A stretch of 64,000 nt of DNA from Mantamonas sphyraenae STR306. Lineage: Eukaryota; Protista; CRuMs. A program made the position numbers and the translations under genes. Below are positions 38,162 through 45,241 of the stretch, piece after piece. Each line of letters opens with the position of its first letter. Position 1 is the stretch's first letter. The stretch lies in NCBI GenBank assembly GCA_026936335.1, contig JAPMXV010000070.1, positions 239,351 to 303,350 on the forward strand. Direction: 5' to 3'. Under the pieces are notes generated by a model that worked only from the letters and a program-made list of their open reading frames with translations, was not told the origin of the DNA and made no database searches.

Positions 38162-38230
38162 ACGTGCATGGCGCAAGGAACGCGTGCGCTCGGTTCCGCA
38201 AGCCTTCGGACCACACGTGCCTTCCCTGTA

Positions 38231-39070
38231 ATGAACACTCGCCCGATTGCCGTCTCGCTGGCCACCGTGATGCTGCTCGCAGTGTGCGGCGCATGCATGT
38301 CGCCTGTCCCCCACTCGAGCGACAACTCGTGGGACTACCTGCTTTTTGTGGTGCAGTGGCCTCAAACAGGCTGTGCAGACACGGACCGCCGCTGCTACAT
38401 TCCGCAAGACGTGAACTACTTTACGATGCATGGGCTTTGGGTAAGTGTGCCGCATGCTGAGGAGACGGGCGGGCGCAGAGAGGGCGCCGTTCACGCAATT
38501 TCCTTCCAGAACTTCCCTCGCTCACGCTGCCGCTCCACACAGCCAAACAGGAACGACGGCTCCTACCCCTCCGACTGTGACCCGAGCAACCCGTTTGATG
38601 CGAACAAGATCTCGGATCTCATGGACGACATGCACAAGTACTGGCCCGATCTGTACGACCCGACGGGCACGGACTTTTACGCCCACGAGTGGAACAAGCA
38701 CGGCACGTGCGCCGAGAGCGACTCGGTGATTTCGGGCCAACACGCCTACTTTTCGCAGATCCTGCAGCTGCGCAAGAACACGCCCATCGACGAGTCGCTG
38801 GCGGCCGCGGGCATTGTGCCTTCCAACTCGACCAAGTACAATGCCTCGGACGTCGAGAGCGCCATCCGCAGCCGCTTGGGCGTCACCCCGCAGCTCGACT
38901 GCACCAGCACGGACCAGGGCATCCTCATCAAGGAGATCCATCTTTGCGTTGACAAGAGCCTGAGCTTCATGGAGTGCCCCTCGTCTGCAAGCGCTCTCCG
39001 CAGCAGCGACCAGTGCCAGGATGGCTTCCTCATTCCAGAGATCCACCACAGTGACGAGTATGCGCAGTAG
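38231..39070 (+). CDS. Ribonuclease T2 (secreted); intron 38441-38542
   Basis: Signal peptide; CAS I FTMHGLW|P and CAS II HEWNKHGTC. Confidence 0.95.
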   Translation: MNTRPIAVSLATVMLLAVCGACMSPVPHSSDNSWDYLLFVVQWPQTGCADTDRRCYIPQDVNYFTMHGLWVSVPHAEETGGRREGAVHAISFQNFPRSRCRSTQPNRNDGSYPSDCDPSNPFDANKISDLMDDMHKYWPDLYDPTGTDFYAHEWNKHGTCAESDSVISGQHAYFSQILQLRKNTPIDESLAAAGIVPSNSTKYNASDVESAIRSRLGVTPQLDCTSTDQGILIKEIHLCVDKSLSFMECPSSASALRSSDQCQDGFLIPEIHHSDEYAQ

Positions 39071-39176: not shown

Positions 39177-40275
39177 TGGTCGCAAGTGGTCAAAGGTTGG
39201 GTTGTGGTGGGTGGAAAAGTGCAGCGTGCGTGCGGTGAAGTGGTGCAACAGGCAATCAGCGAGCACAACCGATGGTGTGCTCCCCAACATGACACGCCCA
39301 CAACAGTGAGGCGACGCGGGGACCACTGCTGGCGCAAGACATGTGGACTCTACACCTTCCTCTTGTGACCATACGGCCCAATGCTGACTTTTTTTTTGTG
39401 CGCACATTCAGAGGAGGAGGCTGGTGGAATTTGTGGCACATCTGGTCGCAAGTGGTCAACGCGATCCCTGAGTTGCATATGAAGGGTTGTTGTCGGTGAA
39501 GAATGGATTGTTGACTTTGTTGACAGTGTGCACACCACATGTCCACACGTCTGAGGTGCTGGCCAAACCTGAAACGCTCGCAACTGCGTGGCGACGCTGG
39601 CAGTGCCGTTGCCCCGGACCCGTGACTCTAACGGGGGTCCCGGGAAGCAGCAGGACTCTATGTGGTGCATATGTTCTTTTTTTGGCTTCACTTTAGCTGG
39701 TGGTGCGTCCATGCCACGGAAGAGGGCCGGACATCGATTGTGTCTTGGTCGCAAGTTGTCCGGACCTCGTTGCAAGACGACGGAAAAGAGGAACATTGCC
39801 TCCACAGTGTGCACATGTTTGTTTGCAATCGCATGTCCACACGTCTGAGATGCTCGCCAAACTTGACACGCCCCGCAACTGCGTGGCGACGCAGGCAGCA
39901 TCGTTGTCCCAGCGCCCGAGACGGTATCGGGTGTGCTGGATTGCAGCAGGACTCTATGTGGTGCATATGTTTTCTTTTTTGGCTTCACCTTAGCTGGTGG
40001 TGCGTCCATGCCACGGAAGAGGGCCGGAATCGACAATGTCTGGGTCGCAAGTTGTCAACGCTGCGCAGGGAATTCGCCACGAAGAAATCGCTCTCCAACG
40101 CGGCTCATTGTCGTAGTCCGCAAATCACATGTCCACACGTCTGAGGTGTGTGCCCAACTTGAAACGCCCGCAACAGCGTGGCGACACAGGCAGCATCGTT
40201 GTCCCGGCTTCCGAGACGAAATCGGGTCGTCGGAGCGCAGCAGGATTCAATGTGGTGCGTACGTTTTCTTTTTTT
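39177..40275 (+). ncRNA. Tandem array (~270-300-bp period) of four candidate structured small RNAs (~39255-39397, 39536-39683, 39830-39980, 40126-40275)
   Basis: Conserved blocks, compensatory changes in hairpins, 5'/3' terminal pairing, an oligo-T run ending each unit, and an upstream (T)GGTCGCA motif. No known family recognised. Confidence 0.6.
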
Positions 40276-40294: not shown

Positions 40295-43200
40295 TCAAAA
40301 CCACTCCTCCGCCTCAAATCCCTCCGCCCCCTGCGCCCAGAATTTGCCCATCTTGTCTTCCAACTTTGCCAGTCGCTGCTGCTGAGCGCGCGTGAGGACA
40401 TTGACGTCCGCGCCGTATGGCAGCAGCTCGCGAATCATCAGAACGGCGCTGTTGTCCACAGCATATGACAGCGGCGTTTGTGCTTGAAGCTCAAAGCCAC
40501 GGCGGACTCCCAACCCCCCCCAGTGTCGAGCCGGCTGAACATCTGCGTGGGGCAAACACACGTTCACGTTGGCACCAGCCTTGAGCAACAGAGCAGCAGA
40601 ACGCACTCTGTTGGCTGTCACAGCCACATAAAGCGGCGTCTGGCCACGGGTGTCTGTTGCATCCACCTTGGCTCCGTGATCCAACATCAACTTCGCCAGC
40701 GCAATGCTGCCGCACGTTGCGGCCGCGTGAAGCGGTGTACGCAATCCCGCCACGCCCCACATCTGGTTTCTGCCCTCCAAGCTGTCGCTGCACTCGTTGA
40801 CATCCACGCCAGCCTCCAGCAACGCCTCGCACGCAGACAGGGACCCGGCCGATGCAGCCAACAGCAGTGCAGTGTTCCCGTCGTAGTCCTTGGCATGTAC
40901 ATCGGCACCCAGCTCCACCAGCAGCGGCACCATGCCCGTGTGGCTTGCTGCCGCCAGCAGCAACGGTGTCCTTTGCATGGGCTCCACTCTCGCTTCCAAT
41001 GACGCTCCAGCTTCCACAAGCAGCTTCACCACGTCATATCTCTCTCTCATCACCGCCCCGTGCAACGCCGTGGCCCCCTTTGTGTCAGGAACGTCCACTT
41101 CTGCCCCAGCCGCGAGCAGAATCTGTACCAACTCCACCGAATCATGAAGAGCCGCCAGACGCAGGGGTAGCCATCTCACTGATTCGTATTCATCAGCGTT
41201 GAATGCAAACATGGCCCGCTGACGCTTTCCGTCCTGCGGATCCTGCTGTGGAACGCTACTCAGATTCACGTCGGCCCCAGCAGCAAGCAGAATCTTCACC
41301 TCCTGAACGGCGTTCAAGCGGCAGGCAGTGCTCAACGGCGTTGCTCCGTTCGAATTGAACCTGTCGACCTCTGCACCGCGACGCAGTAGCAGCTGCACAA
41401 GTTCGGGGTTCTTTGCTGACACCGCCATGTGCAGCGGCGTGGACTTCCGACGGTCGTGCTTGGTCTTGACCAGCCTTGTCCGTGCATTCGGGTCTGCTCC
41501 GTTGTCCAAAAGCCATTCGTAAAACGACAGCGGGTATGGTTCACAACACGCAGCCACCAGTGGCGAGAAAGCGTCCTCAGAGTCAGTGTTGGCCGGATCC
41601 GCTCCCGCCGCCACGAGCTTCTCTGCAAACTCGGGTAAATAGTAGCACGCATTTGCTAGCGTCACGCCGTCGTTTGGGTCCACACCTCGATCCAAGAGCA
41701 GCTCCAGCATGTCCATGTTCTTGACTCGCAACATGGTCTCCCAGTCGAACGGTTTCACCTTTGCTCCCGCATCCAGCAGCTTTTCAACCATATGCAGTGC
41801 TCCACTGTGCAAAGCAAGGAACAGCGGCGTGTTTCTGTGATTCCCGACATCCGGTGATGGGTCCGCTCCGGCATCAAGGAGAAGCGTGGCACAGCTGAGG
41901 TGACAGTTCTGCATTGCCAGCAACAGCGGCGTCACCTGATCACGGTTGAGCGGGTCCACAGGCGCGTCAGCCCCAATCAGGGTCTTTACACATGCTTCGT
42001 TGCCCGCATGCGATGCCACGTGCAACAGGGTGTCTCCGGCCGTGCTGTGTGCGCGTGCAGATCCTCCTGCTTCCAGGAGCAGCTTCAGGCATTCGTCGTC
42101 TGCGCCTGATTCGCACGCAAGGCGCAGGGACATGCCATCGACAGATGCGCCTGCGTCCAAAAGGATGCGCACCACAGAAGGCTGGTTGGTCGCACAGGCG
42201 ACATGAAGCGGAGTCGTTTCGTGTGACCAAGAGCCCTGGCTCGGCACGGCAATCTCGGGCGACACCCCGCACGTGTCCAACAACGCAGACACGACGTTTT
42301 CCATGTTGTGGAAAATGGCTGCGTGGATCAGTGTTTGCGTGCACTCGTCGCTGGTTGCAAGCGAAGGATCGTGTGCAATCAGTTCCAGCGCGACGTCGTC
42401 GTGTTTGTGTTCCACTGCAGTCACCAATGCGGTTGTGCCGTGCCTCTTTGCCGAAGCGTCCGCTCCGGCCTCCAGCAGTGTTTGCACACAAGTCAACCGG
42501 CCAATCTGCGCGGCTTGGACGATGGGGGAGCCCAGGTTTGGGTCTGCGCCACAGGCGATTAGTTGTGCCACAATCCCATCGTGTCCACCTTGCACGGCGA
42601 GATCGAGGACGCTGTGGTAGTGGTTGCTTCTCGTGTGCACGTCTGCTCCGTGTTCGATGAGCGGCAACACAAAGTCAAAGTGTCTGTTCTCAACCGCCAA
42701 CATCAACGCAGTCATGCCGTCTGCCTGGTTCACGGGGAAATCTACGGGGGCACCCGCCTCGATGAGAACGTGGAATAGCTCCTGATTGTTCTTTTCCACC
42801 GCCAGACTGATCGCAGACCAGCCCGAGCTTGCGTGCTGCTTCACGTCTGCTCCGGCATCCAGCAGCAGCTTGACAATCTCCACGTGTCCAGAAGAGCAGG
42901 CTGTGAGTAGTGGCGACGCGTGCACGTAAAAGTTGTTGTCGATGTTGGGATCGGCGCCTCGCTGCAGCAGAAGGGACACCACCTCGGTGTGCCCCTCTCT
43001 GGAGGCCATGGCCAGAGGTGTGTGCTCTCTGCGTTGCTCGCCATCCGGGTGACTGCCCTCATCCAGGCGTCGGCGCACCTCGTCTAGCAGACCACGCCCG
43101 GCCAGGACACCAAGTGACGGGCCGTCCTCTTCACCTTCACCGCCGTGTTTGCGCTCGTGCGCCCTTTTCCCAAACGCAGCCCTCTTGAACGATCGAGCAA

Positions 43201-44290
43201 CCGCTGTCTGTGACGCCTTGCCGGCCAGGCGTCGGCTATTGACCGTCTCGGCAAAGCGCATGTCGCGCTCATACGAGCTTCCGCGACGCACCTCACGATC
43301 GCTTGGGTCGATTCGGAACTTGGCCAGCAGCTCGTGCACGGGTGGCTGTCGATGCAGTGTTGGAAGAGCTGCGGTATCCTGCCAGGACAGCTCACCGTCG
43401 AGGAATTGATTGTCCTGCTCATGCTGCAGAAACTGGTTGAATTGGCCAAACTGTGCTCGGCTGTTGTCAAAGAACGGAGCGAAATTCTGCCTTTTGCTTC
43501 TGCGGCCAAACCGGGATCGTGCATCTTGTTCTGGTGCTTCTCCGTTGCTTGCTGTGGTGACGGTTGCCTTGTCAAAGATGCCCCGTCCAGATTTGGTGGT
43601 GATGTTGGGGTTTGAGCCGAACGGGTTGGAATTGGTGTTGGTGTTTGAGCCGAAGCGGCGGGTATTGTTGTGGGTTTTGTGCTTGCGAATGCCGAATCGA
43701 GAGGTACCTGTGTTGGTGGTGGGCTTGGGCTTTGAGCCGAAGCGGCTGGAGGTGTTGGTGTTGGTGTTGGTGTTGCGCTTGCCGAAGCCGCTGCGAGAGG
43801 TACCTGTGTTGGAGGTGGACTCGGAGTTGTTGGTGGTGGGCTTTGAGCCGAAGCGACTGGAGGTGTTGGTGTTGGTGTTGCGTTTGCCGAAACCGCTGCG
43901 AGAGGTACCTGTGTTGGAGGTGGACTCGGAGTTGTTGGTGGTGGGCTTTGAGCCGAAGGTGTTGGAGGTGTTGGTGTTGGTGTTGGGCTTGCCGAAGCCG
44001 CTGCGAGAGGTACCTGTGATGGAGGTGGACTCGGAGTCGGTGGTGGTGGGCTTTGAGCCGAAGCGACTGGAGGTGTTGGTGTTGGTGTTGGGCTTGCCGA
44101 AGCCGCTGCGAGAGGTACCTGTGTTGGAGGTGGACTCGGAGTCGGTGGTGGTGGGCTTTGAGCCGAAGGTGTTGGAGGTGTTGGTGTTGGTGTTGGGCTT
44201 GCCGAAGCCGCTGCGAGAGGTACCTGTGTTGGAGGTGGACTCGGACTCGTTCTTGGATTCGTCTGTGCAACGCATCGACGCATGTGCCAT
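40295..44290 (-). CDS. Large ankyrin-repeat protein (>20 repeats) with N-terminal S/T/N-rich FG repeats
   Basis: Intact 1331-aa ORF; many TPL..A ankyrin motifs. Confidence 0.92.
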   Translation of the reverse strand: MAHASMRCTDESKNESESTSNTGTSRSGFGKPNTNTNTSNTFGSKPTTTDSESTSNTGTSRSGFGKPNTNTNTSSRFGSKPTTTDSESTSITGTSRSGFGKPNTNTNTSNTFGSKPTTNNSESTSNTGTSRSGFGKRNTNTNTSSRFGSKPTTNNSESTSNTGTSRSGFGKRNTNTNTNTSSRFGSKPKPTTNTGTSRFGIRKHKTHNNTRRFGSNTNTNSNPFGSNPNITTKSGRGIFDKATVTTASNGEAPEQDARSRFGRRSKRQNFAPFFDNSRAQFGQFNQFLQHEQDNQFLDGELSWQDTAALPTLHRQPPVHELLAKFRIDPSDREVRRGSSYERDMRFAETVNSRRLAGKASQTAVARSFKRAAFGKRAHERKHGGEGEEDGPSLGVLAGRGLLDEVRRRLDEGSHPDGEQRREHTPLAMASREGHTEVVSLLLQRGADPNIDNNFYVHASPLLTACSSGHVEIVKLLLDAGADVKQHASSGWSAISLAVEKNNQELFHVLIEAGAPVDFPVNQADGMTALMLAVENRHFDFVLPLIEHGADVHTRSNHYHSVLDLAVQGGHDGIVAQLIACGADPNLGSPIVQAAQIGRLTCVQTLLEAGADASAKRHGTTALVTAVEHKHDDVALELIAHDPSLATSDECTQTLIHAAIFHNMENVVSALLDTCGVSPEIAVPSQGSWSHETTPLHVACATNQPSVVRILLDAGASVDGMSLRLACESGADDECLKLLLEAGGSARAHSTAGDTLLHVASHAGNEACVKTLIGADAPVDPLNRDQVTPLLLAMQNCHLSCATLLLDAGADPSPDVGNHRNTPLFLALHSGALHMVEKLLDAGAKVKPFDWETMLRVKNMDMLELLLDRGVDPNDGVTLANACYYLPEFAEKLVAAGADPANTDSEDAFSPLVAACCEPYPLSFYEWLLDNGADPNARTRLVKTKHDRRKSTPLHMAVSAKNPELVQLLLRRGAEVDRFNSNGATPLSTACRLNAVQEVKILLAAGADVNLSSVPQQDPQDGKRQRAMFAFNADEYESVRWLPLRLAALHDSVELVQILLAAGAEVDVPDTKGATALHGAVMRERYDVVKLLVEAGASLEARVEPMQRTPLLLAAASHTGMVPLLVELGADVHAKDYDGNTALLLAASAGSLSACEALLEAGVDVNECSDSLEGRNQMWGVAGLRTPLHAAATCGSIALAKLMLDHGAKVDATDTRGQTPLYVAVTANRVRSAALLLKAGANVNVCLPHADVQPARHWGGLGVRRGFELQAQTPLSYAVDNSAVLMIRELLPYGADVNVLTRAQQQRLAKLEDKMGKFWAQGAEGFEAEEWF
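43600..44245 (-). repeat. Coding tandem repeat, 105-bp (35-aa) unit SESTSNTGTSRSGFGKPNTNTNTS..FGSKPTT, about 5 copies plus degenerate ends
   Basis: Directly visible repeated gaggtacctgtgttggaggtggactcgga units. Confidence 0.9.
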
Positions 44291-44845: not shown

Positions 44846-44854
44846 TGGTCGCAG
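44846..44854 (+). promoter_or_regulatory. Candidate Pol III upstream element TGGTCGCAG (also 45169-45177 on +, 37429-37437 on -, and TGGTCGCA-like in each 39-40 kb unit)
   Basis: Identical 9-mer in sense orientation about 65-85 nt upstream of all three tRNA genes. Confidence 0.6.
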
Positions 44855-44929
44855 ATATGCTCTCTCATACATGCAAGCCATGTTTCTATATTCACAGATC
44901 GACCCTCTGTATCGAACAACAACACTCAT

Positions 44930-45051
44930 TGATTCCATGTTAGGGTCATGGAGGTCCCGGGTTCAATTCCCGGCGAACCCCTTCTTTCGAATCTCAGGAC
45001 GGCTCCGGTTGATCTGGGATGAGAGATTTCGGGTTCGTGGTCTAGGGGTAT
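44930..45051 (+). tRNA. Circularly permuted tRNA-Pro(AGG): 3' part 44930-44981, 49-nt spacer, 5' part 45031-45050
   Basis: 3' part: TGATT-CCATG-TTAGGGT-CATGG-AGGTC-CCGGG-TTCAATT-CCCGG-CGAACCC-C. Downstream 5' part: GGGTTCG-TG-GTCT-AGGGGTA. Perfect 7-bp acceptor pairing; leader GAACAACA pairs with trailer TGTTGTTC; oligo-T follows. Confidence 0.9.
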
Positions 45052-45060
45052 GACATGTTG

Positions 45061-45085
45061 TTCTTTCTTTTCTCTTTTTTTTTTT
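45061..45085 (+). terminator. Oligo-T Pol III terminator of the permuted tRNA
   Basis: T-rich run ending in T11 right after the trailer. Confidence 0.8.
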
Positions 45086-45241
45086 GCTGTGAATGAACGC
45101 TACTCCTCAGGCGTGCGTGATGCAGGTGGTGCTCCTGTTCCGCTTCTTTCTTTTCCCTCCTTGCCGTCTGGTCGCAGGGCGGAGTCTGCGAGACCTGATG
45201 GCAAGATCGTCTACTGGAAAATGTCTTGCAGTATCGAAAGC

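Follow-up and report, generated by a model that had tools for sequence, protein, structure and literature searches.

In vertebrate genes of the U6, 7SK and tRNA-Sec type, through the proximal element, and in the class I genes of Dictyostelium, through the DUSE, the start of transcription is set by an upstream box placed at a fixed distance. The Dictyostelium class I RNAs are lineage-specific, multi-copy short RNAs with paired ends and a conserved internal motif, features in which the RNA described here, whose lineage specificity is putative, resembles them, being two to three times their length. Vault RNAs, in turn, are Pol III transcripts described with lengths of 84-190 nt (PMC9326685, PMC7058938). 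Their conservation in animals resides mainly in the A and B boxes (PMC7058938), and the trypanosome vault RNA, which reaches up to ~190 nt, was recognised by its bulged terminal helix, TEP1 being the sole TROVE protein (PMC9326685). Outside deuterostome animals a vault RNA has been identified only in trypanosomatids (PMC7058938, PMC9326685). Here we analyse an array of four units in a window of 64,000 nucleotides (the whole stretch of DNA that was analysed, to which all positions refer unless a contig is named) from Mantamonas sphyraenae STR306. With a probability that we put at roughly 0.7, these units would be four independently promoted, functional genes of an undescribed structured small RNA of ~150-170 nt, and the family is probably made by Pol III. 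The initial annotation of this DNA had noticed the array and interpreted it as a lineage-specific family of Pol III RNAs under structural selection; the observation is confirmed, and the interpretation is partly supported.

The four units are co-oriented and lie within the 1.2 kb that separate two genes converging with their 3' ends, one for RNase T2 (38168-39070, + strand; Pfam E 4e-54) and a large one for an ankyrin-repeat protein (40295-44290, - strand), inside a block with tRNA genes on both sides. Tandem Repeats Finder reports a period of ~296 with 2.5 copies and 80% matches over 39536-40274, and a fourth, much more divergent unit, hereafter copy 1, lies upstream of this span. All units follow the same plan, i.e. 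a box of the form (T)GGTCGCAAGT(G/T)GTC, ~53 non-alignable bases, a conserved stretch and a run of six to nine T residues (T6-T9), and the GGTCGCAAGT 10-mer is found exactly at 39178, 39444, 39747 and 40043 of the + strand, on which the boxes, predicted RNAs and central conserved blocks all lie. Copy 1 has its box (TGGTCGCAAGTGGTC, an exact match) at 39177..39191, and its predicted RNA, a divergent subtype whose start is taken as the box start +67, extends over 39245..39397 including a T9 at 39389-39397; this RNA has a fold of -48 kcal/mol and a covariance model score of 114 bits, and its central conserved block, formed by the hairpin P3 and its flanks, maps to 39283..39322. The 14-mer of the copy 1 box is found elsewhere in the genome before tRNA-Sec and the SRP RNA. 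In copy 2 the box (exact match) occupies 39443..39457, the predicted RNA 39511..39683 (T7 at 39677-39683; 166 bits; -66 kcal/mol) and the central block 39562..39602. Directly 3' of its T-run there is a 48-base block with no strand assigned (39684..39731), 47 of whose 48 bases are identical to those at 39981-40028. The box of copy 3, at 39746..39760, has the form TGGTCGCAAGTTGTC, which also stands before the U5 candidate and U6; it is followed by a predicted RNA at 39814..39980 (T6 at 39975-39980; 173.5 bits) with its central block at 39856..39897, and the second copy of the 48-base block (39981..40028, again with no strand assigned) comes directly 3' of the T-run. Finally, copy 4 has a box at 40042..40056 in which the leading T is replaced by G and the 10-mer is exact, a predicted RNA at 40110..40275 (T7 at 40269-40275; 166 bits) that ends 20 bases from the stop codon of the ankyrin gene, and a central block at 40152..40192.

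Calibration on known RNA genes gives the box a defined position. Counting from its first G, the RNA 5' end lies at +68 or +69 in the 5S rRNA genes (n=5), at +68 in tRNA-Sec, at +73 in the SRP RNA, at +75 in one tRNA elsewhere in the genome, at +67 in U1, at +66 in U3, at +71 in both U4 genes, and at +72 and +77 in the two tRNA-Arg genes of the window. The sequence TGGTCGCA is present upstream of both tRNA-Arg genes and of a permuted tRNA-Pro candidate in the window, and the box also precedes U6 and the U5 candidate. By itself the 10-mer shows no genome-wide enrichment, 37 sites being present in 25 Mb and 36 of its reversed control, and many of its sites lie at a fixed distance 5' of known RNA genes. 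The longer form GGTCGCAAGTNGTC, in which 13 of the 14 bases are fixed, is matched exactly at 11 places in 25 Mb, when simple arithmetic assuming uniform base composition predicts ~0.75. Four of these sites belong to the array, and the remainder precede the U5 candidate, tRNA-Sec, the SRP RNA, U1, U6 and two further, unassigned loci, so that five of the seven sites outside the array lie 5' of RNA genes (assigned by Rfam, and by eye for U5). All four units have what the box-driven small-RNA genes of this genome have, namely a GGTCGCAAGTNGTC whose first G stands 66-73 bases upstream of the 5' end (taken here from the inferred start) and a T-rich run right after the RNA (T9, T7, T6 and T7, respectively); such runs are also found at the 5S, tRNA-Sec, tRNA, U1, U3 and U5 candidate genes. 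The box is a genuine promoter element of small-RNA genes, general and not Pol III-specific. It had earlier been taken for a Pol III-type signal, a claim that does not hold for the box by itself: the same box and a T-rich tail flank U1, U3 and U5, and because the box precedes U4 as well as these three genes it does not identify the polymerase. The related statement that a (T)GGTCGCA-type motif stands 80-93 nt upstream of each unit, as it does before the tRNAs, is retained for the motif itself, and the distance is corrected to 76-93 before the conserved core. A search of the literature for the box gave nothing but primer or sequence matches that are, to judge by title, unrelated. The calibrated box is usable for listing every small-RNA gene of the genome. 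One external promoter element seems to serve 5S, tRNA, SRP, tRNA-Sec, U1, U3, U4, U5 candidate and U6 genes alike, a set that in most eukaryotes is divided between Pol II and Pol III.

The start positions of the array RNAs were inferred from this calibration at +67 from the box start, which places them near 39245, 39511, 39814 and 40110 and predicts transcripts of ~150, 170, 165 and 163 nt for copies 1 to 4, respectively, counted to the first few U residues. In the 53-base spacer between box and start the identity is at the shuffled level in six out of six copy pairs (z <= 1.5), and identity rises to 73-80% (z 11-16) among the predicted transcripts of copies 2-4, with recognisable similarity between copies setting in 5-15 bases past the predicted start and running to the T-run. 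Folds that begin at the predicted starts have longer terminal helices, which extend to the transcript ends. The inferred starts fit two independent observations, the contrast in identity between spacer and transcript and these terminal helices. The initial annotation had reported a four-copy array of units of about 145 nt between the RNase T2 and ankyrin genes. The array stands, on the evidence of Tandem Repeats Finder, the exact boxes and the T-runs; the length has to be revised to ~150-170 nt, because the known genes put the start ~67 bases after the box begins.

Copies 2-4 fold alike, into a three-way junction borne on a long terminal helix with bulges. The terminal helix is made of three segments, interrupted by a bulge on the 5' side and by a conserved one of three bases in the 3' strand; it comprises 17 bp and two bulges in copy 2, and in copy 4 the four bases preceding the U tail are paired to bases 3-6 of the predicted RNA. 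The fold further includes an invariant single strand of 11 bases, a helix P2 closing off an internal loop and hairpin P3, which is nearly invariant and has one bulged base and a loop of AACA or AACU, and a second arm, P4-P6, whose sequence is free to change while its pairing is kept. Among the 47 pairs proposed for copies 2-4, standard pairs make up 98.6% of the cells and only two cells are broken; two-sided changes occur in four pairs (one each in the outer terminal helix, P2, P5 and P6) and one-sided changes with pairing kept in ten, and a slid control in which the partners were moved by 1-3 columns left 28-45% of the cells paired. When all four copies are considered, 91.6% of the cells are paired, against 83.1 +- 1.6 in column shuffles, and two-sided changes are seen in 12 pairs, against 5.0 +- 1.6, with none of 500 shuffles equalling either value; these are counts on four paralogues, three of them close, with a structure derived from the same sequences, and they consequently lean towards the structure. 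The folding energies of copies 2-4 are no better than those of shuffled sequences (z -0.25 to -1.8); therefore, the case rests on the distribution of substitutions and not on stability. The helices quoted in the initial annotation were all found in the sequence, these include: a conserved hairpin with compensatory change in copies 1, 2 and 4, a second hairpin that has changed in sequence and stays paired, and paired unit ends in copies 2-4, with a separate pairing in copy 1. The alignment of homologues from the whole genome that had been proposed as a check is answered in part, as the searches of the genome retrieved no further copies to be aligned and two-sided changes exceed those of the shuffles within the four copies.

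Copy 1 has only the box, the 41-base central block and the T-run in common with copies 2-4. Its box is identical to that of copy 2 in 16 out of 16 bases and its central block is 73-78% identical to those of copies 2-4, the remainder being at 35-43%, which is the random level. Because copy 1 keeps the central block while its flanks are at the random level, no part of the family is more constrained than this block. Copy 1 still forms a long 3' hairpin as well as a terminal helix, both from unrelated sequence; its best fold has an extra 5' hairpin in place of P2, and imposing a helix of the P2 type costs 3.5 kcal/mol. The best energy z-score among the copies is that of the copy 1 core (-3.1). The family, as its sequences read, has two subtypes, one represented by copy 1 and the other by copies 2-4. 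Conservation of the 48-base block that follows copies 2 and 3 exceeds that of the RNA, although the next promoter spacer is randomised. No counterpart was found 3' of copies 1 and 4, nor any match or shared motif near the other box-driven genes that were fetched. The block could serve copies 3 and 4 as an upstream element or represent a patch of recent gene conversion. Its start loosely recalls the 5' end of a tRNA or vault RNA, with an A-box-like TTTAGCTGGTGG.

The mechanism that we propose for these genes starts with a factor that would bind the box and set the start ~67 bases downstream of its first G, as at 5S, tRNA-Sec, U1 and U3, after which the polymerase, most likely Pol III, would stop within the T6-T9 run and leave an oligo-U tail. 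The transcript would close upon itself via the long bulged terminal helix, its 5' part pairing with the bases before the U tail, and this helix would bear a three-way junction made of the near-invariant hairpin arm with its conserved flanks and of the arm that is paired and free in sequence. The invariant block is predicted to be a protein-binding platform, the terminal helix together with the U tail could provide end protection, and the variable arm might act as a spacer. Ends that pair and carry a U tail, one invariant block with a hairpin, and arms that stay paired while their sequence varies point to the design of a protein-bound scaffold RNA and not to that of a guide or a catalyst; we thus read the family as what would be a stable RNP scaffold of the Y or vault RNA type. 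If expressed, an unclassified structured RNA would be added to a genome in which the search for the other housekeeping small RNAs was mostly successful.

The leading specific guess for such an RNP is the vault, because MVP and TEP1 are encoded in the genome and no recognisable vault or Y RNA is. According to this explanation, which we consider doubtful, the array RNA would be the vault RNA of the organism, bound by the TROVE domain of TEP1 and transcribed from an external promoter, with no internal A and B boxes. The genome holds a clear TEP1 orthologue at C67:42500-52400, in a frame that is open for 2990 aa (2826 aa from the first start codon) and encodes an N-terminal TROVE domain (312 bits) and WD40 propellers of the TEP1 type (240 bits for the second TEP1 propeller), and MVP repeats are matched at four loci, two of them on C6 and one each on C22 and C58. 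This TEP1-like frame is the only TROVE match, with no Ro60-sized TROVE protein, and since the genome gives no Rfam match to Vault or Y RNA, the partner RNA of TEP1 is missing from the inventory. The predicted RNAs have a length within 84-190 nt, a bulged terminal helix and a U tail, and these, along with the several diverged and clustered copies, fit the vault RNAs described so far. However, neither box A nor box B is found within two mismatches in any unit, when both are matched by a tRNA-Arg control; RF00006 has no match at E<=10 in the units, nor any in the genome; and what is constant in all copies is the central hairpin rather than the terminal helix, the opposite of what vault and Y RNAs show. 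The presence of other orphan small-RNA genes in the genome furthermore makes the array one candidate among several. It is only tentatively that the family can be regarded as the partner RNA that TEP1 and the vault lack in this protist lineage, which is outside animals and kinetoplastids, with an external promoter and a constant central hairpin; if not that, it would be the RNA of a wholly undescribed RNP. No GGTCGCA box is present in the 3-kb loci around the two MVP genes of C6.

A different explanation is that the array is a tandem duplication that is inactive at the RNA level, consisting either of decaying pseudogenes or of a DNA boundary loaded with polymerase factors between convergent genes. 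The family is confined to one locus, in a block bracketed by tRNA genes, its folding energies are unremarkable and the expression of the units is predicted only, all of which would suit this explanation. We nonetheless judge it improbable: the spacer has drifted to the shuffled level of identity, yet the box is intact in four out of four units and the transcribed part has been kept, and the changes in the helices overwhelmingly preserve pairing, which a purely DNA-level role does not predict. The same pattern, i.e. conservation limited to the box and the predicted transcript together with helix changes that keep pairing, upholds the earlier view that the array is not a neutral satellite. A SINE or satellite was likewise rejected on the grounds of only four copies in 25 Mb, as BLAST and the covariance model R1, which was built from these four copies, retrieved no further copy from the genome among the best candidates that each search scores, so that very divergent ones could have escaped. 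Homologues outside this genome were not found in pattern searches of metagenome and viral contigs; the central-block pattern had no match in viral contigs, and the two metagenome contigs that matched it are bacterial-looking coding sequence alike in only the 25 pattern bases and were dismissed as chance matches. The best relative on record of the neighbouring RNase T2 is a plant protein with 39% identity.

The functional genes that we favour have no counterpart in Rfam. At gathering thresholds no match falls in the units in a scan of the whole window, and the permissive scan of the array and of a single unit (E<=10) returned only noise (Ms_AS-1, Afu_203 and SL1; E>=0.76). The Rfam scan recommended in the initial annotation thus yields no family even in its permissive form, and the claim that the units match neither tRNA, 5S, spliceosomal snRNAs, SRP, Y nor vault RNA and contain no B-box is upheld. 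The database is weak in this lineage, where U1 (44 bits against a threshold of 69.5), U3 (33 bits) and U6 (36 bits, over a partial model span) all stay below their gathering scores and the U5 candidate was identified by eye, being missed by Rfam; Rfam-based annotation of this genome will consequently miss core snRNAs. Under the permissive setting U1, U3 and U6 are still detected with E values of 1e-5 to 1e-8, and therefore a comparably diverged relative of a known family would have shown. A very divergent housekeeping RNA beyond the reach of Rfam (snRNA, snoRNA, 7SK, telomerase RNA, MRP or RNase P), which the weakness of the database would favour, is accordingly the least probable of the alternatives and very improbable in itself, given the mere noise returned by the units, the presence elsewhere in the genome of U4, RNase MRP, RNase P, 5S, SRP and tRNA-Sec above their thresholds, the lack in the units of an Sm site, a C box, an ACAGAGA box or a telomere template, and the existence of four diverged copies with free-running stems, which is unlike a single-copy catalytic RNA.

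Individual classes were discarded on their defining features. An Sm-class spliceosomal snRNA was rejected for want of an Sm-like site and of any snRNA match at E<=10, a box C/D snoRNA for want of a C box in copies 2-4 and for a CTGA that lies near the 5' end and not the 3' end, and an H/ACA snoRNA for want of an ACA three bases from the end. Neither CCCTAA nor TAACCC, as the template of a telomerase RNA complementary to the telomere repeat, occurs in any copy. A Y RNA was ruled out, there being no RF00019 match in units or genome and no Ro60 partner, as was a tRNA, permuted or ordinary, since ARAGORN and Rfam detect none in the units and these have no A or B box. The overlapping open reading frames belong to no Pfam family, and the copies differ by indels and end in T-runs, which excludes a coding exon; by eye, the defining bases of the hammerhead and other ribozymes, the k-turn and the iron-responsive element are absent.

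Other candidate RNA genes were noticed along with the array. At L004 (C1:199711, +) an orphan box-driven candidate RNA of ~115 nt with a T6 end, at ~1568-1680 of the locus, presents a long 5' hairpin followed by a second hairpin with AUUUGUAUG in its loop, and has no Rfam match at E<=1. Another orphan box-driven candidate, of ~110 nt and with a T5 end (L014/L042; C20:75436-75449, -), has TATAAAG ~28 bases before the predicted start and no Rfam match; it may be a U11-like RNA, given an AAAGGA in its 5' part that could pair with a 5' splice site of the U12 type. At L028/L045 (C54:293648-293661, -) an exact 14-base box is followed ~50 bases on by an ATG and a protein-coding-like frame, and not by a small RNA. 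The permuted tRNA-Pro candidate of the window (44846-45090), with its box at 44846, looks genuine by eye, and its parts come in the order anticodon-arm 3' part, T-arm, acceptor 3' strand, a linker of ~50 bases, acceptor 5' strand, D-arm and a long T-run.

Among known systems, the array shares its gene signals with the 5S, SRP, tRNA-Sec, U1, U3, U4, U5 and U6 genes of the same genome, which have the box and the T-rich run as the array does, whereas its transcribed sequence is unrelated to those small RNAs. It differs from the externally promoted genes of vertebrates and Dictyostelium in that the same box here serves 5S and ordinary tRNAs too, and in that the units have no conserved TATA-like element at -30. 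With the Y RNAs (RF00019) the array shares a Pol III-type gene, a bulged terminal helix and the organisation in small clustered families of paralogues; it departs from them in the greater length of its RNAs (150-170 nt), in having no match to the model and in a genome that encodes no Ro60-like protein. The vault RNAs (RF00006) are set apart from it by their internal A and B boxes and their model, which the array RNA does not match, and by the central hairpin being its most conserved part, and the association with vaults is to be taken as a candidate one. If expressed, the array RNA offers a concrete candidate for the RNA with which TEP1 and the vault would associate. Like the vault RNAs, including the trypanosome vtRNA that is bound by TEP1, it has an oligo-U tail, a bulged terminal helix, a variable internal arm and clustered, diverged copies.
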